A stretch of DNA of 64,000 nt from Octopus bimaculoides. Lineage: Eukaryota. The position numbers and the translations under genes are program-made. The stretch covers positions 3,431,966-3,495,965 of the forward strand of contig NC_069001.1 of NCBI RefSeq assembly GCF_001194135.2. The letters are read 5' to 3'. Positions 12,706 to 51,057 of this stretch are shown here, one piece after another. The notes under the pieces were generated by a model, which was not told the origin of the DNA, searched no databases, and was given only the letters and a program-made list of their open reading frames with translations. Position 1 is the stretch's first letter, and each line of letters begins with the position of its first letter.

Positions 12706-12802
12706 TCTCACTAGATCTCGTACCAGCTTCATCTTCTTCAATAATAAACACACCACAATGAACCGTGCATAGTATCGGAGTTTCTTCACCATTAAATCTG
12801 GC
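12706..12802 (-). CDS. SCAI: SCAI internal exon (97 nt, phase 2 to 0): (R)PDLMVKKLRYYARFIVVCLLLKKMKLVRDLVR
   Basis: Acceptor ctgtttag and donor gtaagt. Matches recalled SCAI PELVVKKLRYYARFIVVCLLLNKMDVVKDLVK. Not in the ORF track; found by reading the minus strand. Confidence 0.95.
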
Positions 12803-14289
12803 CTAAACAGTAAGACAAAACAGGCAGAGGATATTTTATTGGGGAAAAAAATATATTAAATTAAAAACAATTGTGTAATTGACATTGAAACAGATGTGTA
12901 TAGACATATAAGATTAAACACACACACATATGCATATATATTATATACACATAGATACATAAATACACAAACTTCAGATGATACGTACATTACATTCCTG
13001 GACATAATTATATATATATATATAGGGTAAGATAGGTGAGAGAGACATATACACTACATAAATACTTACATAACAATTCTAGACCCATTCAATTTCCACA
13101 CACATATACTAATATATACATATATGAATGTTATATATAAATATATGCAGAAACAGATTTTTTTGTACATAAAAAAGAAATATACATAAACACAGGGATG
13201 CAAAATGACCATATAGCTATTAAATTACACTAAAGTGCAACTTAAAAGATTCATAAAAAAACTTTTATTTAAAGTTTAAACCTGTCTAAGATTTAGCCAT
13301 ATCTTTGGTTATTTTGTCATTGTTTACACTTCATTCATATTCCATAAGCATGAAAAAAAAAATCAAGTTAAATCTAGTTAAAAGAAGGTTTACAATGCAT
13401 ATCGTCTTTGAAAATATGACATGAGAAAATGCAAAAATCTCAGGAAGCTATTTCTAACAGTCAAATAACTAAACAGAGGTTTATACAATTCCATGTACTA
13501 ATGAATCAAAGCTTTTGTAATTTGAGGTACAGCAGAACTATTTGAGCATTTCATCAAGAACAGAGTCTGTTCTGGATGCCTTTGCAATAGCTGTTTCTAC
13601 TTCAGAGAGATTTCTGCAAGCAACTGTTCATTTATTGCATGTTGTTGCAGATGTTCAAAGACTACTTCATCAAATGTTGAAGGATGATTTAAAACATTGT
13701 TAAAATGTTAAGTCCATCATTTCAACAAAACAGTTGAAGCAATTAGAAAGTTTCCATCTTTGTTGTCTTTGCAAAATCTCTTAGATTAAGTGATAGGACA
13801 TGCTACCCAATACAGAAACCCTATCACAATGTAAAATCAGTGATAGGCAGGCATTACTAATGAAACAACTACTTCACTGATATAGTCAGGTAACATAGAT
13901 GAGAAATGATTGCATTCTCAAATCAGTCTTTTACAACCAGTTTGCTAGAAGTGTTGTACATGAGCATCACTGAAGTTAATATAAAAAATTTCTAAAGTGA
14001 AATCTGATGATGTGCCATATAAGCAAAGTGATGACTTTCTTCAAAGATTTAACAGACAATCATTGTGATTGGAGAACTCTCTGCATGAAGGCCACTAAAC
14101 ACTTCAAGTAGATTTCATATTGAGAAAAGGAGGAATGAAAGATACAGAAAGAGATCCAAAATAATTACAATGCCCTGTAACTTTCTACACCTTGATAGCT
14201 TCTATAGACTTGATTGTCTTGTCTTACTCTCATTATTTCTTTATATTATGTCTACTACTGTCCAATCCATGCCAACATAAAAAGTCAAT

Positions 14290-16686: not shown

Positions 16687-18919
16687 NNNNNNNNNNNNNN
16701 NNNNNNNNNNNNNNNNNNNNNNNNGTGTGCATGTAGGTGTGTGTGGGGGGGGGGTTGAATATTCAAGTCTATGCACATGTGTATAAACACAAATGCACCC
16801 ATTCAGAGCAAAGCAACCTTATGCAAAGCTTGACATTAAGACAAAGACAACAATGAAAAAAGTCACAACACAAACAACATATACAACAATTACTGGTAAA
16901 ATAGATATATCTATTTTACTAACATCAAGTGAGTAGAATTGTCAGTGGTGGAACAATGGTAATAGCCATAAAGATATATGCTGATAGAAGTTAATGGATG
17001 GCGCAAGGATAGAACTTCTATCCCTGTGTGTATGTAGGTGTGAGTGATAATGTGGTCAGCTTCAGCTGACCACATGATAACTACAAGATTTGCTCCATGC
17101 GAGAGCTTGTTCTCTTTATGAGACAGCTATGAAAGCTCCTATATTGTACCTTGAACTATTAGAAATGCAGCCAAATTCCCCTCAAATCAACACATGATTT
17201 TCTAAAATGATGAATATATTATGTGTCCCTAAATGTACTTTTCATTAAAAAAATAAAAAGAGCTCAGCTGGGACAGCTTTGATCATGAGTCTGCTCAATT
17301 AAAGCTGACTTGGAGTTCAATAACAACAACAGGAGCAATGTATCACAAACAAATCTTTTATTAGCTTGAAGAGCTGAGTTTAAGTCCTCGTATATATACG
17401 TAACATAGTTCTGGCCTCCAACCAGTTCTATCATCATTAAACAGAGCTCTGGCCTTTGAGTAGATGTATCATCACTATAAGCAGCACAGTTTTGACCTCT
17501 GACCAGATTTATCATTGCTGCAAGTAGTACAGTTGTAGCCTCCAACCAGGTCTGTCATCAGTACTGATAGCAAAGTTCTGGACCCAGCATATAGCTGGCT
17601 TCCTTGTTGGTCCATCATCACTACACTAATGTTCTGTATTTGATGTTAATGACTAGACTTTATTTATTGCTATAGTTTGCAGTGGGATGGATAATGTTGT
17701 TGGATTCTATACCTAGTCCTTGGGTACCATTAGAGTATTATTGCAAGTATTTGGACTCAGTTCCCTCTTGAGCCACATTTTTCTTCCAAATGCTTTCCTC
17801 GGTAAATGGAAGGGGAATGAAAAGATCATAGGCACTGTCTGTCTCTCTTAACTTACATAAATAAAATAGAGTTCACTTTCTACAATATGTGTAGTGGTTT
17901 GACCTCTGAAACTGTGAAATATTTAATTTTATTTACATCATAACCACAGACTTCCCTACAGATGTGTATGACTCAGGCTCTCTATTCCACAGTACATATA
18001 TGAGCTGGACTTATCCAAGGAGATGGATACTTCCACAAAGTATGGTTCTTCACAGAACTTAGACACCCCTGTTGTTAATAGAATAAAATGGTAGAATATG
18101 GCAGAAGCTTGTATGAATAAACATATAAACAAGGAAGCCTCTATTTAGTCACTCCATTTGGTAGAAGAAATAGCTGCTAAATTCCATGAAAGCACATCCT
18201 ACAATCTTCCAGAAAGAAAAAATAAATTGGATAATGTGATCCGAAACTTTATGGTTATAGTTGGAATGCCTTCGATCATAGAGTACTGAATCAAGACTGA
18301 CTTGGGTCTACATATCAAACAACATATATACATACATGTATACAGAAACATAAGGACATTGATGACAAGCTGGCAAATATATAGATACAACAGAGAAATA
18401 GAATTTCACATCAAATTTAGTAGTTGTACTTTAGAACCAAAGTATAACAGTTTTTTACAACATTCAAATAACTGGTTTCATCTGAACAAACATTAACTTC
18501 ACTTCGATGTTACTTTTATAACATTTGAACGTGAAGAATATTTTACAATATTCTAAAATTTGTCTTAACAAGAAGTTTAGCATTCTCATTTCTTATGTCT
18601 GAAAATTTGCCTTTCCTACTTGAATTTGACATTAAAATTAGTCAACATGAACATTTATATTATAAACTGGTTAAAGAAGTAGTCTATTTCAGCTGGCAGA
18701 ATTTTTTTATATTTGATGAGTTAAAAGACGTATTGAAAGAACATCTCCCCTTAAAAAAAAATCCAAGCAAAATACTTGTACATACAGATGAAAAAGCTTG
18801 TATATAAAGTATATATACATGTATATAGGAAGATGTGTGTTTCAAGCTATCCTATCTACTAACTGAACCACACATCTATATCTATATATAATATACATAT
18901 ATATATATATATATATATA

Positions 18920-19398
18920 NNNNNNNNNNNNNNNNNNNNNNNNNNNNNNNNNNNNNNNNNNNNNNNNNNNNNNNNNNNNNNNNNNNNNNNNNNNNNNNNN
19001 NNNNNNNNNNNNNNNNNNNNNNNNNNNNNNNNNNNNNNNNNNNNNNNNNNNNNNNNNNNNNNNNNNNNNNNNNNNNNNNNNNNNNNNNNNNNNNNNNNNN
19101 NNNNNNNNNNNNNNNNNNNNNNNNNNNNNNNNNNNNNNNNNNNNNNNNNNNNNNNNNNNNNNNNNNNNNNNNNNNNNNNNNNNNNNNNNNNNNNNNNNNN
19201 NNNNNNNNNNNNNNNNNNNNNNNNNNNNNNNNNNNNNNNNNNNNNNNNNNNNNNNNNNNNNNNNNNNNNNNNNNNNNNNNNNNNNNNNNNNNNNNNNNNN
19301 NNNNNNNNNNNNNNNNNNNNNNNNNNNNNNNNNNNNNNNNNNNNNNNNNNNNNNNNNNNNNNNNNNNNNNNNNNNNNNNNNNNNNNNNNNNNNNNNNN
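18920..19398. other. Assembly gap (largest of seven; both flanks are (AT)n)
   Basis: Run of N. Four of the seven gaps abut (AT)n tracts, which is typical of short-read assembly collapse. Confidence 0.99.
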
Positions 19399-19763: not shown

Positions 19764-19842
19764 ATATATATATATCAATATCAAAAACGGTACGACGATG
19801 AGGAACAATGGAAAGAGTTCAAAAACATGCATGATATCTTAC

Positions 19843-19857
19843 CTGGCGGCGTGACGT
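19843..19857 (-). CDS. SCAI: Candidate 15-nt alternative SCAI microexon ACGTCACGCCGCCAG (inserts 5 aa: EDR-RHAAR-PDL)
   Basis: Acceptor aacag (19860-19858) and donor gtaaga (19842-19837). It is symmetric for the phase-2 intron and has no stop codon. There is an AG-free stretch of about 75 nt upstream, UGC motifs at -15 to -26, and UGCAUG at +12. No transcript evidence is available. Confidence 0.6.
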
Positions 19858-20076
19858 CTGTTGATGCCAAAGCAGCAATAGCAAGGTTTAAAAAAATAAT
19901 AGAAATAAAGAAAAAAAAAACAGTGACAACGAATGCTTACTTGAAAAAAAATAATGGTAGAGATATATATATATATAGGTGATATCATGACATGAAGGAG
20001 TGCAAGTGAGGTGTAAGGATATAGGATATATATAAATATATATATAAGTATATATATATATAAATATACATACACA

Positions 20077-20113
<37 letters not shown>

Positions 20114-20128
20114 NNNNNNNNNNTATAT

Positions 20129-28051: not shown

Positions 28052-28950
28052 ACAATGTTTGCACAGCTCTACCTGATGAGGAAACAAATACAACAACAGA
28101 TTGTCACTCATTATTCTTAAGATAGAGAAGCAAAGATGTGAGTATACATAAGATTAAGATGATAACGATGATGATAGTGGTGGTGGTCACGATGATGATG
28201 ATAAGGGAGGGTGGAAGGGCAGAAGAGTGAAATCTATATAACCCCATGAAGGAACAAGGATGCTGATCTTTTCAGTGGAAAACGGTTTGAAAGCAATGTG
28301 ATAATTTTGATATCAAATTGTATTATTGTTTGCTTTGTATTCCAAACTGACAGTAGAATGTAGGGGTGTGGGACAGAGAGAAGGAGGGAGATGGTTGTTG
28401 GTGTGTAGGGGGGGGTGTTAGATGAAGATGCTTCTGTGAATATGTTATGCAGCAATAATATCAACCAATGCTGCACACCACAGTGTTGGTGGTGATGGGT
28501 AGAGGTAGGAGATAGAATGGTAAGTTCTAGCTATTTAATCATTCTATAGAGAGAAATACACAACACTCTAAGAACAGAGGCGCAAACATAATAATACATA
28601 CATTACATATATACATTCCATACATACATACACAAAAGCACATAAAACCCAATAAATCATATATACAAACATATGTTACATACATATGTACATACACACA
28701 AATTCAGTTACACCTGCACACATGATTGACTAAAACACACACACACACACACACACACCACCACCACCACCACCAGTACAAATAGTAATGCATAAACATC
28801 AGTTCATAACACTTATGCAGACACACTCAAAACCACATACACATAACTCATAACCACACACAGCAACATATAAACATAGCTACACTTGTACAAATAGATT
28901 TACCAACATGTAGCTAGCCAGATAGTTAGCAACCATACCATACACCACCA

Positions 28951-33568: not shown

Positions 33569-36500
33569 TAATAATAATAATAGTTGAAGGAGGCGCTATA
33601 CAGATAAGGAGGAGGGTAGCAAGCATCTACACCCACATAGAAAGAGATGTATTACGAGACCATTCTTTGTAGAATGCAGAAGGAACTTACCGGTTTTGTG
33701 CACACAGGTTTTCTTTCCATTTTATTCTGTTAGTAGAGAGAATTGGAGTCACAAATCAGATGTCAGTAGTTGGTGCCTACTGAGAAGTCTAAGAGTCTAA
33801 GTATAGCTTCAACAAGGTAAAGAAGGAATTAATAGCTCATGGTAAAACATGATAGAGGAACCAAGTCATTTTAGAACTGTTAAGACGGTAGAAGTTAAGA
33901 CTTCCTATTGAAATAGAAGCCAAGACAGTACTGTTACAAGTTGCTCAGACAAGACAATCAGTGAGAGCAATTTGAACAAGAGTACGATATTTCAAATAAA
34001 AGAAGAGAAAATAAATAAAAAGAAGAAAAGAATGAGACAATCATGTAATCCCTTGCAATGTAAACAGTCTTTAAAAAGAAAAAAAGGATTTGGAAATTCT
34101 TATATTCCAGGTAAGTGCAGTGGATATAGAGGTGCAGAAGTTGTCACAACAATATACAAGTAGAACAAATCAAAGCATTTTAACAGATTGACTTCTCACA
34201 GGATAAGAGATGGAAAATTATGACAACCACATAGCTTACATGCAGGTTTCATGATCTAATTTAATGCTGAGCAGAGAGAAAAAGAAAGTTTCTTTTGTTT
34301 GTTTGTTAAAATTTAATTAAAACAGAAGTTTTAAAGTCTCATATAAAATTATACATTTGAAAGAATGTAATCTGAAACTACATGAAAGAAGAGATTAGTT
34401 ATGATTATTAAAAATAAGCTCTGTTGAAATATGGAAGTAATAGGATTCTAGGCAATAACATAATTGATGTGTAGCAATTGTTGTGGTAAGCAAAATGGTT
34501 GTTATTGACTGTTACCATTATTTATATTACAACCACTGACTCTGGCCTCAATGCAAGGCATAAAACTGTGTGGTTGTCTCAGTTTGTCCAAGCTGACAAC
34601 AGTCTCCATTTTTTTCTTTATGGTTGAAAAATAAAGTAAGTGGTAGGAAAGGCATATCCAACTGTAAAACCAACAATCCTACACATACGTGAATGGGACA
34701 TTAAATGAGAGAAAGAGAGAGAAGAGGGCAGACAGGCAATGAACAAGTGACTGAATTTCCTAGCATTATGAAGCCACAGTCACCTCACCTCTTCAGTAAC
34801 AAAAAAAAAAAAATGTTTGTTGGTTTCATCTCAGTTCTATATCTCATAGTTCAAATACATTCATGGATATAGACATTGTTCCTTATTTTTATAATCGTTG
34901 TGTCTGAGGAAGAAATATATTGTGCGTAGACCCAGAGGCTCGGGTGGGAAGAGGAGCATAAGAAAACTTTCATTAATAGAAGTGGAAGACAGGCTGGAGT
35001 AATAAGTTATATGCAAAAGACAGACTAACTAGTTTAAAGGATTTCATTCATGAGTATAGAGAATTGTGTCATCTGAACATGAATAAATGGTGTCAGAGGT
35101 GATAAATGTTGAGGAGACAACAGTTCCTTAGATGATGGAGACAAAACCAATATAGTACAGATAATGAAGTTTTTTTTTTTAAAACAAGTTATTAGTTTTT
35201 TGTGTAATCAACAGAAAGAAGATTTTTCAAAGGTTTTTCTCATACATTTTGTGCAACAGCTTTAGTTTATTCTCTCTAGAGAAGAGTTTGGAATGTCAAA
35301 TTCAATTACTGTGAGAAGTAGAAAGTCTAATGTCTTGGCTCTTGCTTTCCAACATAGTAATTGGATTTAGCTAGCCTTCCATAAACTCTCCCTTTGATTT
35401 ATCACTGCTGACACACACTCCGATCAATTTTATTTGGTTCTGGACTTCACCCTATTCTCTCTATAGTTACAGATTATTTCTGTAAAGATGACCAATGGAT
35501 CTGGCTTAGTTGTCCACAATATTATCATCTCTTGTGATAATAGCAGTATGGTAGTTTTCAACTGATCTTATGCATAGATGGGATTTACTTCATTGCTTGT
35601 GATGTTGCCTCTGCACAATAAAGGAAAAATCTACATGATCACCTGACTTGCTAAAATTAGCTGCTAAATTTCCTTCAAATGACAACCTACTATTTTAAAA
35701 ATTAATAAAAGATGTGATGGTCACAACTGGAACATCCTTAAAGTTGACCTGGAAATAAAGAACAAGTGTGGTAGTTGGAGAAGCTAAAAAAGTATTTTAC
35801 AGAGAGATAAAGAATATTGCAACATGATTCCAAGATTCTAAATAGCTACCTGCAAAAACACAGTTACTGTAAAACTTCATAGGAGAAGTCAATAACTACC
35901 CACAAAAATGCAGACATTGCAACACTTCAGGACAGAAAGCAATTCTGAGGTAGATCATTTGACGGTAGCTGCTAGGATGTCACCTGATCTTTGCAGTTTA
36001 GGCGATCTCATAACCCTAATTACTTCAATCTAGCTCACAAAAATACCATGCCTGCCTTGCAGTTGAGAGATTGCCGTTAAGAAAATCAGTATATTATATG
36101 AATTCAAATATTCAAAATAACTAAATTAACCATTCAGTGGATATTAAGGAGAGATGAAAACACAAAGTTATGCCTACATCTAAGAAGCTTGTTCACAAGC
36201 ACGTTCCCAGGATTCAATGTCACTACATGGCATGTTAAGAAAGTATTTCCTACTATTGTAGACTCAGGTTGATTAATGCTTCATGAGCAGGATTCTATAG
36301 ATGGAAACAATCCAGAACCCTTGTGTGTGTGTGTGTGTGTCTGGGTAAAATGGTACATCATATTTTGTCACTTTGCATCAAAATGCAAGTTAGCCATTCA
36401 ATAAAAAGAGATTGATAAAATAAGTACCACAGTAACCAGAAGATAGAAATATTTTATCGATTAAAACCCTTGAAGTTGGTTTCCCTGCATGGACACAGTC

Positions 36501-38500: not shown

Positions 38501-41500
38501 AACTAGAAGCCATACACCCATCCCTACCCACTCGCAATAACATAGTAAAATAGGTGTAAAACAGTTAGGAATAAAATATTCAACAGAATAAGAATCAGAC
38601 ACTAACAAAGTGACAAAGCTCTTTTGTTGGAAGTTGGACAGTAATGGGGGGGGGGGAGCATATGCATGAGTTTATATACAACCTCGTGTATGATTGCTTA
38701 TACGTGAGCTTCATGTGTTTGTATGTGTGGATGTTTTTGTGTGTTCATATTTGCATGTGTTTACATTCATATATGTATATATGCATGTATGTGTGTTCTG
38801 TCTCCACAAACATTTGTAAGTTCATATGTGTACTTTTTTATTTTTTAATCTAAAAAGAGAAATGAAGGAGAGAGGGGGGAGAGCAGGAAGAGTGGTGAGA
38901 GAGAGACAGCAGTACTCAAGCACATTGAGTTCTATGCGTGAATTCTGTATGTGTGTGAGTGTTTTCTTGAGGACTCTCATAGAATATGTCAAGAATATAT
39001 TTAAACAACAGATAATTCAAGAGAAAATGGGCTCAGATTACCAGCTCAGTGATTGGAAACAGGAACCTTGGAGTATTGGAAATTATGAACCATAAAGTTA
39101 TAATGTAGTTATAATGTATTAAGGAATTATCTACATTTATATATTTGTGTTCTGTAATTTTGGTGCATTTTGGTTAATCAACAGAAATTAATAAAAAGAT
39201 GTAGAAAGATATACTAAATACAATACAAAATTTATTGAAATTATTTTCACTTCAAGAGAAGGAAAACAATCACCTTGGTGGTTTGAAGAAAGGCAGCATC
39301 TGCGATAAATTCTGAATAAGAAAAGATAATCTCAAGGATTCAACATTTCTTTTGAATTGACATGCCATTAAGAAATAATGTGTGTNNNNNNNNNNGGGGG
39401 GAGTATAAGTATGTATGTATGTATACACAAATAGAGAATATTTGAAATGTTTTACATATCTTCCTCATTTCAATCATTGATTAGATGTATGGAATGTAAA
39501 GCTTACTCCATAAACTATGGAGTATGAATGCCTGGGACATGTACCAATAATTGAGGGTATTAGCAAGAACTTTTCTTCAGAGTGAATTGTGTAATATATT
39601 AGTGATTACGAGTATAAATGAAGGTCTATAATCATGAAATATTGACCAATAAACTGTTGAGTATAGCCATGAGAATGTGTGTGTGTGTGTTTATTAACTG
39701 AAGATTACTGTATCACACTAAAACTTGGGATTTTGCCACTCCATGGTACAATGAGTAATGTCACAAAGTAGTGAAACTGAGGTACAATTTGATACTCTAA
39801 TCTTTGTCTTATGATAAACAAAGACATACTGCATTCAGCAAATAAGCAATCGAGTCCTCTTTTGATCTGTGAATGCTTAAATTTGTGTCTATACATATAT
39901 ACACATATGAATGCATGCACAGACACACATACATATATGCATACACACATATTCTTATCACTTAATCAGAGGAGGAAGAGATGTGCCCTTGACATTTTTT
40001 AGGGCTTCCATGAAAGATAGGGAGAAGAAAGTTATCTTCAGACCAGAAACCTGGTCTCAATGCTTGCAGCAAAAAGGATTCGGTTAAAGAAACTCAAGGG
40101 CCATGGGCCATATGACAATGTTAAACCAGGCAACAGATTAATGTATGTGCCTTGTATGTGTGTGTACACTGAATAAGCTGTTAAAGATAAATCTTGAAAC
40201 CCTCCTAAATCAATATAATATATATCTACACACACTCACACACATACACACACATATATATATTTGTACTTGTCTGCACATTTACATATACAAAGAGCTT
40301 TGAACTTATCTTCATACATAAATTAAGCTTCAGAGAAATGTGCACAAAACATTATTCATGTGAACACTTGCAAACAGGCTTTCTTTATACAAAGGCCATG
40401 GGAGAAGGTAAGGTGATATGAGATATGGATAATCCAGTAGAAAGGGTGATGGGCTGCTGATGGCATATTGTTCAAACCTCGCTGTGACTATTTGTCTGTG
40501 CAAGACATATTGTAGTACTGGACTAAACTGACCTTGCTGAAAATAGACATTATTCTTGCTTCATATATGTGAAAACCTCACTCAGCTGTAGAAATAATTG
40601 CTGAAAGAACCTACATAACAGCAAAATTTGCACCACCATCCAACCAATTTTTAGCAAAGGAGAATATGGAATGCTATTAAAATATATTTGCATGTATGAG
40701 GGTATATATAGGCACACACACCTTATCTTTGAATGCCTTTAACAGAGTTTCATGCTTTTATAAGCATTTGAACTGGATCACTGGTTTTCTATCCAATGTG
40801 TTTTTGCTTGTGGCCTTCCCCTTGCACTTTGGATAGCTTATAACACACATATGCATGCGTGCGCGTGCACACACACACACGAGTACGAGTACATATATAT
40901 ATGTAGCTAAATAAACTTATGTGAAGAGAAAAACATGAAAGTTTCATGTGAGAACTGAATGTAAATCTTTCATTAGATAGCCAAATACATTAGTTTTGTT
41001 ATCTACAACCTCTTATAGTATCATTTTTTGTATATTCCTGTTCATTTGTGTATATTGTCATTAACAGTTATAGTATGTACAATAATTTTTTTCCCCATTG
41101 CAATTCTGACCCACTTGTCTCTCCACTTTTCATCACCTTTGATGTGTCCAATTCTCTAGGCATCACACTAACAACTCTTCTCAGTCTTCCCTCCCTAGAA
41201 CATCAACCTTCTGGAAACTCCTCCCTGCTCATGTCTTTTCTGTAGGTATATACTTTCAACAGTTTAACTAGAATAGTAAAGGCATCCGTCTCACTGGTCT
41301 TAGAAGGGGCCTGCAATGGTCATAATCACTGCCCCTTCTTCCACATCCAGCAAGTAAAAAAAGCCTATCAGATAGATTGTACTAGTAATTCAAAGGTGCA
41401 GCCTTGTCACAGATTGTGTCATGCTGAGAATTACATGTATCTGAGGAGTGCTCTGCCACTTATACTCTAATTCAACAAGATAGTAATTCAATTGACTTTA

Positions 41501-46025: not shown

Positions 46026-47664
46026 ATTATATATATATATGCATATATACACACACACTCATACAAAACAAAACAATGAAGTATTTGAATTTAGAAAATT
46101 GCTTTTTTTTTCACTTTTTCACCACATCAAAATGAAAATTGATTCTCATCCTAAGAATTAATAGAGTAAATAATGTTTGATTGTAAGGCAATGAGGGGGA
46201 ACAGATTTCCGGAGCAATCATTGGCATAATAGATAAGAATTGTTCTTGTTCCATGGTCAAACATTTCTCCTCCATACAAATATTCAAGCTATCTAATCAG
46301 AGAACTTTTATATAGTCATCCAACCTATGTCAAAACATCAGATAAAAACCTTCCTCAAATCACATCCTACTCTCTTAAGATAAAATTAAAACACATTGGG
46401 TAATGTACTGCCAAATATATGTTATCTGAAAAAATAAAAGGATGGTATGCACATGATTAGAACACTTTTAGTCCTAGATGCTTTATGACTGAATGCCCTG
46501 CCAAACACCAACCACCTTACAAAGTGGACTGAGTGCTTTTTACATGGCACCATAACTTGTACTTTATTTTATNNNNNNNNNNNNNNNNNNNNNNNNNNNN
46601 NNNNNNNNNNNNNNNNNNNNNNNNNNNNNAAGTTGGTTTCAGCAAGAATTGAACCCAGAATGTAGAGAGTCATAACAAATGCTGTAAGGCATTTTGTTTG
46701 ATGCTCTAGCAATTCTGCCAATCTGCTGCCCTCATGGGACTAAATAATAACAACGAAGAACACATTGTATAATGAAGTGCTACATACACTAGATCTTTAG
46801 ATAAAGGATAAGACATTCAGAGCTGAAACACCTTTGAATATAGGTATCTTGGATCAGGGCTGAACTGAGACTCTACAACAAAACACAAGCACACATACAT
46901 ACAAGTGCACATACACACATATACACATACACACACCATTTTGTCTATACAGTGTGAGTAGCATTGACATCCATAATCAAAGCTGGCCATTTTTAGCACC
47001 GAGTTATTGATCTACATGGCAAAATATTGATTGACATCACAAAAATAGCTGACGTCTCTAATAAGAAATGCATGATGTTTCCAATGAATGTGAAGATACT
47101 TGAAGACAACAATGAATTTCCTCTGTGTTTTGCCTATGAACCACGTCTTCCATGTGTCTGTATAGAGGGGAGGTTGTGTGTGTGTGTGTGTGGGGGGGTG
47201 ACATGCATGTACGTGCACATGTGTGTGTGTGTGTGTGTGTGTGCTTTGGTGATGTAGAAGAACAAGGTTTTTACCTTCAGCTAACAAAGGTTTACTGGGA
47301 TGATGATGATGATGACGACAGTACTAATAATGATTATGGCAATGGTAATGATAATGATGTTAGTGGTGGTGGTGGTGGTAATGACTGTTAAGGATAACTG
47401 TTGTGATGATGATGATATCTTTAGTGGCAATGGTTGCAGTCATGATGGTAATGGGATGACGGATCTAGTATTGATGATGATGAAGATGATGATGATGATG
47501 ATGATGATGATTCTTAATGAGTACACAATGTTAATCTTTCATGAGGAAACAAAAAAAAAGAACAGCATGTAATTCTATTACACATTAAGAGTGAGGATGA
47601 GAGGGAGAAGAAATGAGATAGTAGAGAGAGTAAGGGAGAAAAACAAAATTTTTTAAAGTATGTC

Positions 47665-47794: not shown

Positions 47795-48828
47795 TCATAT
47801 AGATATATAAATAGAGGGTAAGAGAGAGAGAGAGAAGTTAAAGAATGAGAGAGATGCAAGAGTTATTAGAACTCCTCAGATGAATGAGTGATGGCTCAGT
47901 ATTAAAACAGTTTGTTTCCACTAATAGGTTTCAGTTTATAGAAATAACTGAGAACAATTCTATTACAACTTCCGGTGACATTCAGATTGTACAGATCTCC
48001 CCCCACTCCTCATCATAACCAGGACATTAAAAAAAGAAAATGATGAGGGAAGCTTTAATCAATGCTGGTTTTATGTTTATGATCACTGAAGACTTATCAA
48101 AAGATATGAGAAAATGAAAACTAAAATCTGAGGAAATTAGTGACAGTCTGGTGGGGATCTGGCAAAAGAAAAAAATAAAGAAATAAAAAAAGTTATAAAA
48201 AAAAAACTAAAATTTTACAAATTTTATAAAGACGTAAACTTAAAACAGTTTCTCGACCCAGATTCTTGACAACAACCACAAATAGTGGTGATCAAATTTC
48301 AAAGATTAGCTTAAACATGGAGAATAAGAAACAAGAAGCCACATCTTTACAGAAAAATCATTTAAAGAAAAAAATTTTGTTTGCTTGTTATTGCCCCCAC
48401 CCCCACCCCCACCNNNNNNNNNNNNNNNNNNNNNNNNNNNNNNNNNNNNNNNNNNNNNNNNNNNNNNNNNNNNNNNNNNNNNNNNNNNNNNNNNNNNNNN
48501 NNNNNNNNNNNNNNNNNNNNNNNNNNNNNNNNNNNNNNNNNNNNNCAATAGTCACAACCGAAATTAAAATAAAAATTCTATATTTTTCCAACAGTGTTAA
48601 ATGAGGTCCTGAAGATGTATTGATGTCATGCAGACTAGTTCAATGGATTAAATTGTAGATAAAAGATCAACCTGAAGAGAACACCATATTATAGATTGAG
48701 AGTGACCAAATAGATGTGAGTTAGCCAGAAGCAACTTTTGACAATTAGTGTACAGATTACAGAATTACTTCATTGGTGAAACTTCTTTTTCTATCACTGC
48801 AAACATATGAACAAATAGAATATATATT

Positions 48829-50958: not shown

Positions 50959-51057
50959 CTGTCCTCTTTGTTTGCCTTTGAGTAATATGCTCGCATACGG
51001 ATTGCTGAGTAGAACGAAAATGATTCATTTAGGTAGTTTGTTTCACTAGTTCGTAAA
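50959..51057 (-). CDS. SCAI: SCAI internal exon (99 nt, phase 2 to 2): (Y)LRTSETNYLNESFSFYSAIRMRAYYSKANKED(R)
   Basis: Acceptor tttttcag (AG at 51059-51058) and donor gtaagt (50958-50953). The peptide closely matches recalled vertebrate SCAI YLRTSETSYLNEAFSFYSAIRQRSYYSQVNKEDR. It ends AG|, which the next exon completes with G. Confidence 0.95.

Follow-up and report, generated by a model that had tools for sequence, protein, structure and literature searches.

A conserved 15-nucleotide microexon of octopus SCAI with candidate eMIC- and Rbfox-type splicing signals

Neural microexons that depend on eMIC-domain proteins (SRRM3/4 in vertebrates and Srrm234 in Drosophila) are 3-27 nucleotides (nt) long and keep the reading frame, and they are recognized through an unusual arrangement of splicing signals. 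In mammals and flies, UGC motifs are found after the branch point or pyrimidine tract and before the acceptor AG, within long AG exclusion zones; a bipartite UCU...UGC enhancer and, in mammals, a strong 5' splice site have also been described, and the factors reported to bind the upstream enhancer region include PTBP1. Bilaterian ancestors already possessed the eMIC domain, and recurrent-exon 'hotspots' in orthologous genes have been described for both the eMIC and the Esrp programmes. Rbfox proteins act from the other side of the exon, as their binding to a downstream UGCAUG promotes exon inclusion. Here we compare with these systems a 15-nt exon of the gene SCAI that is encoded in a 64,000-nt stretch of the Octopus bimaculoides genome (contig NC_069001.1, hereafter the window). 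The exon is almost certainly a real, conserved microexon that is alternatively used according to the RefSeq models; its sequence context suggests that it may be read by the same kind of splicing code, and the intron in which it sits splits a codon at which small inserts are found in many bilaterian SCAI proteins.

SCAI lies on the minus strand of the window, where a tblastn search with human SCAI (an approximate query sequence) located eight collinear exons. The microexon resides in a 38,156-nt intron that separates two constitutive exons, referred to below as exon A and exon B. The relevant features are as follows, with positions counted from the first letter of the window and with splice boundaries marked by a slash.

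51057..50959, minus strand: exon A, constitutive SCAI exon 5' of the microexon, coding ...FYSAIRMRAYYSKANKED-R and ending GAG GAC AG/gtaagt.
19858..19929, minus strand: 3' splice-site region of the microexon, with a U-rich tract at 19929..19890, three UGC(U) motifs at 19883..19872 and the acceptor cAG at 19860..19858.
19857..19843, minus strand: the microexon, ACGTCACGCCGCCAG, a 15-nt alternative cassette that together with its split codons codes (R)RHAA(R).
19826..19842, minus strand: 5' splice site CAG/GTAAG (GTAAG at 19842..19838) and a UGCAUG hexamer of Rbfox type at +12 to +17 (19831..19826).
12802..12706, minus strand: exon B, constitutive SCAI exon 3' of the microexon, coding PDLMVKKLRYYARFIVVCLLLKKMKLVRDLVR and beginning ag/G CCA GAT.

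On the minus strand the microexon and its surroundings read ...ttgtcactg(t)10ctttatttctattatttttttaaaccttgctattgctgctttggcatcaacag/ACGTCACGCCGCCAG/gtaagatatcatgcatg... Because exon A ends GAG GAC AG and exon B starts G CCA GAT, the intron is in phase 2, and inclusion of the microexon converts EDR-PDL into EDR-RHAAR-PDL with no stop codon. The diagnostic junction strings are GAGGACAG-ACGTCACGCCGCCAG-GCCAGATTTA for inclusion and GAGGACAG/GCCAGATTTA for skipping. With a length of 15 nt, cAG and GTAAG at its boundaries and a preserved frame, the exon has the general properties of the microexon class. An initial annotation, made from the sequence alone, had assigned the gene to SCAI on the minus strand and had placed a stop-free 15-nt exon in the phase-2 intron between positions 50959 and 12802; the tblastn alignment, the protein domain assignment and the RefSeq isoforms described below agree with both assignments. 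It had also named membership in a high-copy repeat as a way in which the proposal could fail, and a repeat origin of the segment is ruled out within the window, as the 15-mer and its 180-nt surroundings have no second copy in the 64 kilobases (kb). A plus-strand open reading frame that appears to be a chance occurrence (19827-19982) also spans the microexon.

Protein database searches connected the locus to annotated isoforms. Pfam domain PF12070 was present on all protein database matches. A 183-residue query returned matches of no more than 320 residues, none of them from cephalopods, yet these already contained inserts at the same junction in other animals; full-length proteins were reached with a 617-residue chimeric query composed of human ends and an octopus middle. 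One of the proteins retrieved, P0121 (587 residues, from assembled RNA), reads ...KEDR-IKWKENLCAQNR-RHAAR-PDLMVKK..., and its 90% identity cluster includes RefSeq SCAI isoforms of O. bimaculoides and Octopus sinensis. The annotated forms differ at the junction between exons A and B, and the additional 12 residues of isoform X1 map to a second small exon in the same intron.

SCAI X1, XP_014777914.1 / XP_029649245.1 (P0242): both small exons included, EDR-IKWKENLCAQNR-RHAAR-PDL.
SCAI X2, XP_014777988.1 / XP_029649246.1 (P0241): microexon included, EDR-RHAAR-PDL.
SCAI X3, XP_014778064.1 / XP_036367730.1 (P0243): both small exons skipped, EDR-PDL.
O. vulgaris SCAI model, CAI9738508.1 (P0245): RHAAR included.
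33726..33691, minus strand: 36-nt alternative exon, AATAAAATGGAAAGAAAACCTGTGTGCACAAAACCG, coding IKWKENLCAQN(R), with acceptor ctactaacAG/ and donor CCG/GTAAGT.

The peptide encoded in the window with RHAAR included is 100% identical, without gaps and over 315 residues, to isoform X2 of the two octopus species and to the O. vulgaris model. Because of this identity we conclude that the microexon is, as judged from protein and genome sequence, a genuine 15-nt SCAI cassette exon that is already present in public annotation, and it is therefore not novel as a feature. The X2 protein equals the predicted inclusion form exactly, and all of the RefSeq isoforms are computed models. The initial annotation had supposed that exons of this kind are usually missed; this holds for an older UniProt model of the O. 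bimaculoides protein (A0A0L8IHM0), which lacks both small exons, but not for RefSeq, whose isoforms X1 and X2 contain the microexon. Searches of the literature that combined SCAI with microexon, SRRM4 or alternative splicing returned nothing relevant on the SCAI microexon, its tissue pattern or its regulation.

The 36-nt exon, located 3' of exon A and 5' of the microexon, is included together with the latter in X1, where the two small exons are joined as AAAACCG/ACGTCACG. It was overlooked in the initial annotation, which had described a single microexon in this intron. A TACTAAC box adjoins its acceptor AG, and neither a UGC in the 150 nt upstream nor a UGCAUG within the 200 nt downstream was found (UGCAU only). 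As the 36-nt exon is devoid of these motifs, the eMIC-like grammar described below would be specific to the 15-nt exon.

RNA from cuttlefish reveals that the microexon is spliced and conserved beyond octopuses. We examined 19 assembled Logan contigs (L001-L019) from 19 sequencing runs, of which eleven (L001-L011) were read at the nucleotide level and eight (L012-L019) were counted by their called proteins; the protein encoded by the contigs is 99.5% identical to a SCAI fragment of Acanthosepion (Sepia) pharaonis. Three of the 19 run accessions could be traced to papers, all on Sepia esculenta larvae, with extraction from whole larvae stated in one. The 15-nt exon is included in all 19 contigs, 17 of which contain both small exons and two of which contain the 15-nt exon only; skipping was not seen in any of them. 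In the eleven contigs read as nucleotides the spliced junctions are ...GAAGACAG/(36 nt)/ACGGCACGCTGCCAG/GCCAGACTTG, with the cuttlefish 15-mer ACGGCACGCTGCCAG present in each. The microexon is thus not a rare neuron-only form in the cuttlefish material, where all 19 contigs include it and the traceable runs derive from whole larvae. The two contigs without the 36-nt exon are L003 and L004 (SRR25158150 and SRR8281693); inclusion of this exon differs among runs of the same projects, since neighbouring accessions carry it, while the 15-nt exon is constant.

Octopus and cuttlefish are identical at 13 of 15 positions of the microexon and at 35 of 36 positions of the longer exon, and all three changes are synonymous, whereas the constitutive SCAI exons are 80-88% identical. 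Examination of related species had been put forward in the initial annotation as a check on the exon, and the outcome, a 15-mer spliced in cuttlefish RNA with only synonymous substitutions, favors it. After the divergence of octopods and decapodiforms, intron sequence would no longer be expected to align, and for this reason the peptide-preserving conservation shows, at the level of sequence comparison, that both small inserts are under selection. A protein search with isoform X1 returned no further cephalopod cluster, so that squid and nautilus are not part of the comparison, and the exon pattern CAGACGNCACGCNGCCAGGTAAG had 0 matches in a metagenome collection.

The splicing signals around the microexon resemble those of eMIC-dependent exons in several respects. 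The zone free of AG upstream of the acceptor AG measures 76 nt. Pyrimidine content is 65% over positions -43 to -4 and 73-75% over -63 to -78; the actual pyrimidine tract is displaced upstream, as a 40-nt stretch that is at least 85% pyrimidine extends from -72 to -33 (19929..19890). Three TGC triplets are located between this tract and the acceptor, at -26/-24, -20/-18 and -17/-15. Each is followed by a T, yielding three copies of TGCT within -26 to -14 (in the region 19872-19883 of the minus strand). On the other side of the exon, TGCATG occupies +12 to +17 relative to the donor (19831..19826). These measurements reproduce what the initial annotation had described, namely about 75 nt of largely pyrimidine sequence without an AG, three TGC triplets, a CAG/GTAAG donor and a TGCATG at +12 to +17, and its remark that the 15-mer holds three CpGs in a CpG-poor background also stands, as the observed-to-expected CpG ratio of the intron is 0.15. 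Only three loci in the 38,156-nt intron reach at least three CpG per 15 nt: the microexon itself, a site near 40872, and the element listed here, which may be a constrained intronic element.

19788..19800, minus strand: CpG cluster, CATCGTCGTACCG, with three CpG, 43-55 nt 3' of the microexon.

Not all of these features are equally informative. The AG-free zones that precede constitutive SCAI exons are also long (97, 97, 70 and 84 nt), and an AG-free zone alone is therefore not discriminating. The UGC cluster and the UGCAUG are the more discriminating features: UGC occurs in the intron at 12.9 per kb, and three UGC within -40 to -4 are seen at none of the eight constitutive exons, while TGCATG occurs at 0.5 per kb, which corresponds to a chance of about 3% per 60-nt stretch. 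The intron contains 1191 potential cassettes of 3-51 nt that are flanked by AG and GT, preserve the frame and are free of stop codons. Only four of them satisfy YAG and AG/GTRAG, and once the AG-free zone is also required to reach 40 nt and the pyrimidine content to reach 60%, the SCAI microexon is the sole survivor; it also passes the subsequent filters for at least two UGC and for a downstream UGCAUG. When the same successive filters were applied to 2000 introns simulated with a first-order Markov model, the mean numbers of candidates per 38 kb were 0.88, 0.037, 0.0065 and 0, and the full set of motifs was reproduced in none of the 2000 simulated introns, figures that flatter the microexon because the thresholds were set after the candidate had been seen. 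A chance origin of the combination of displaced pyrimidine tract, UGC cluster, CAG/GUAAG donor and UGCAUG at +12 is unlikely.

These features suggest how the exon could be recognized. At 15 nt it falls below the size suited to ordinary exon definition, and recognition probably proceeds through the near-consensus CAG/GUAAG donor together with the displaced layout of the 3' splice site. The succession of a U-tract at -72 to -33, three UGC at -26 to -15 and then the AG corresponds to the layout that eMIC-domain SRRM proteins use to enhance inclusion, and the UGCAUG at +12 is a candidate Rbfox enhancer site. We assign a probability of roughly 85% to the core of this reading, i.e. a genuine cassette microexon together with this general mode of recognition. 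Like the eMIC-dependent microexons of vertebrates and Drosophila, the SCAI exon is short, keeps the frame and has an AG exclusion zone, a displaced pyrimidine tract, UGC before the AG, upstream UCU elements and a strong 5' splice site as in mammals, and it is highly conserved within its clade; unlike them, its tract is U-rich rather than CU-rich and its inclusion is dominant in all of the cuttlefish contigs, and the likeness in SCAI is one of motifs. With Rbfox-activated exons it shares a UGCAUG on the inclusion-promoting side, which in SCAI is perfect and lies 12 nt 3' of the donor; a difference is that the SCAI exon has one copy of a hexamer that chance would supply in about 3% of 60-nt stretches. 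That SRRM (eMIC) proteins, Rbfox or both actually drive the exon, with enrichment in neural tissue, is a tentative proposal to which we give somewhat less than even odds.

Inclusion of the microexon would lengthen a surface loop of SCAI. No solved SCAI structure was found in the copy of the PDB that was searched. The site was located in a model of the skipping isoform that AlphaFold built from a 97-sequence alignment (mean predicted local distance difference test score (pLDDT) of 78 and predicted template modeling score (pTM) of 0.83). The insertion point, R127/P128, is at the end of a loop formed by residues 115-127, whose block pLDDT of ~58 is modest, and which is positioned between the helix of residues 100-114 and that of residues 128-147. 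At its end the loop passes into helix PDLMVKKLRYYARFIVVCLL, which is part of the N-terminal helical domain. In the model the microexon plausibly extends this loop by a basic patch, R-R-H-A-A-R, which could tune a protein-protein contact of SCAI; loop lengthening is the usual mode of microexon action.

Several observations weigh against this account of the microexon and its regulation. Inclusion in 19 of 19 contigs, with the traceable runs from whole larvae, fits broad inclusion equally well as it fits neural dominance, and as skipping was seen in 0 of the 19 contigs, the evidence for the skipping isoform consists of the RefSeq models. The 36-nt exon is also efficiently included, although it lacks UGC and UGCAUG motifs. 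The three upstream UGC are all UGCU and match the Muscleblind motif YGCY as well, and the pyrimidine tract is U-rich and not CU-alternating. The lower third-codon-position divergence between octopus and cuttlefish in the small exons, 3 of 17 positions as compared to 121 of 311 in the constitutive exons, is a trend only (Fisher p = 0.12). Finally, in a model of the inclusion isoform the pLDDT falls below 50 around the insert, which is why the skipping isoform was used to place it.

The strongest competing explanation is that the microexon is broadly or near-constitutively included by virtue of its strong donor, with X3 a minor form and with the UGC and UGCAUG motifs incidental. The uniform inclusion in cuttlefish agrees with this, as do the near-consensus donor and the inclusion of the microexon in the single O. 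vulgaris model, but RefSeq models the skipping isoform X3 in two octopus species, and chance would very rarely combine a displaced pyrimidine tract with a UGC cluster. The larval data are less decisive than they appear, because the nervous system of cephalopod hatchlings is very large, so that whole-larva RNA from such brain-heavy animals is compatible with neural dominance, and because assembled contigs give the majority path only; we consider broad inclusion a serious alternative with a substantial minority share of the probability. A second explanation invokes repression rather than activation: a Muscleblind-type factor acting through YGCY, or a PTB-like factor acting on the U-tract, would confer tissue specificity by relief of repression and not through SRRM or Rbfox. 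The three TGCT within -26 to -14 would suit such a factor, given that in RNA maps of MBNL proteins YGCY clusters upstream of an exon favor skipping, and the presence of PTBP1 among the factors that bind upstream of microexons points in the same direction. Yet SRRM4 binds these same motifs in published cases, the two mechanisms could operate side by side, and the argument for repression is made from motifs; we regard it as distinctly unlikely. A third alternative, in which the segment is a never-spliced pseudo-exon formed by a random AG...GT pair in a long AT-rich intron, could appeal to the 1191 frame-preserving, stop-free candidates of the intron and to the frequency of long AG-free zones in this genome, but it is refuted by the annotated isoforms of two species, the O. 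vulgaris model and the spliced cuttlefish RNA with its synonymous-only divergence, and its probability is close to nil. Neural regulation of the SCAI microexon by an eMIC protein or by Rbfox is a reasonable but tentative reading of its motifs.

The junction interrupted by the microexon is variable well outside the cephalopods. Among 266 SCAI proteins (cluster representatives or members from the set P0001-P0355) in which the junction could be read, 188 have a plain split arginine or lysine at this position, and the remaining 78 have an insert of 1-17 residues exactly there, amounting to about 30 distinct peptides. The frequent leading S or R and trailing R of these inserts result from the phase of the intron (AG/N ... 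AG/G). The inserts were distributed as follows.

Cephalopods: RHAAR, with or without IKWKENLCAQNR.
Other molluscs: YG in scallops, SLSQVQI in Patella, LLLMQYR in Pomacea and 15 residues in Haliotis.
Nemerteans and a priapulid: 12 residues in Tubulanus and 1 residue in Lineus (nemerteans), and SISG in Priapulus.
Chelicerates: SLPYSH in ticks and GSLPH in the horseshoe crab Tachypleus.
Crustaceans: SVQM in decapods and HHGGS in Daphnia.
Insects: YDKRKQR in Macrosteles, SDVLCC in Schistocerca and SF in Tenebrio.
Reptiles: SGHASVL in lizards and 14 residues in one turtle.
Sequences without a species name, part of them marine metatranscriptomic: YELQR, SPHDR and YGDYR.

This distribution raises the speculative possibility, which we rate as less likely than not, that the phase-2 intron splitting the arginine codon of KED(R)/PDLMVKKLRYY is a bilaterian-wide site of alternative microexons, either as an ancestral, fast-evolving neural microexon of eMIC type or as a recurrent hotspot of exonisation. 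If it were a hotspot, the site may tune one surface loop of SCAI. On the bilaterian-wide reading, the cephalopod exon pair would have been fixed before octopods and decapodiforms diverged. The situation is similar to the recurrent-exon hotspots of the eMIC and Esrp programmes in that different small inserts occur at one split codon in many bilaterian lineages; it differs in that the SCAI inserts are seen at the protein level, where shared ancestry and independent origin are both possible. The literature searches on SCAI described above returned no paper that names it as an exon hotspot.

The microexon itself adds nothing to public annotation, and the bilaterian-wide reuse of the SCAI junction is the more interesting lead. 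If the proposals made here are true, what is new is that cephalopods apply the SRRM/Rbfox microexon code to a SCAI exon, and that lineage-specific microexons retune one and the same loop of SCAI throughout Bilateria. For the prediction of microexons, the approach is usefully validated by the fact that a grammar of splice sites, UGC and UGCAUG, read by eye, singled out a true 15-nt exon among 1191 possible cassettes in 38 kb.

The SCAI gene is large in both octopus species, as the X1 gene ranges span 278 kb in O. sinensis and 210 kb in O. bimaculoides. The N-terminal residues of the older model A0A0L8IHM0 match two pieces of the intron at 100% (17636..17499 and 13110..13069, minus strand), while a third intronic match (28802-28936, minus strand) is only 56% identical and crosses a stop codon. 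The two exact matches suggest O. bimaculoides, or a very close relative, as the source of the window; the N-terminus of the older model is probably either an artefact of ab initio prediction or a putative alternative start. Runs of N (18920-19398 and 20114-20123) and long TA microsatellites flank the region of the microexon, which lies inside a 715-nt resolved island between two gaps, and further N runs or TA microsatellites of the window are located at 194-313, 16687-16724, 39386-39395, 46573-46629 and 48414-48545.

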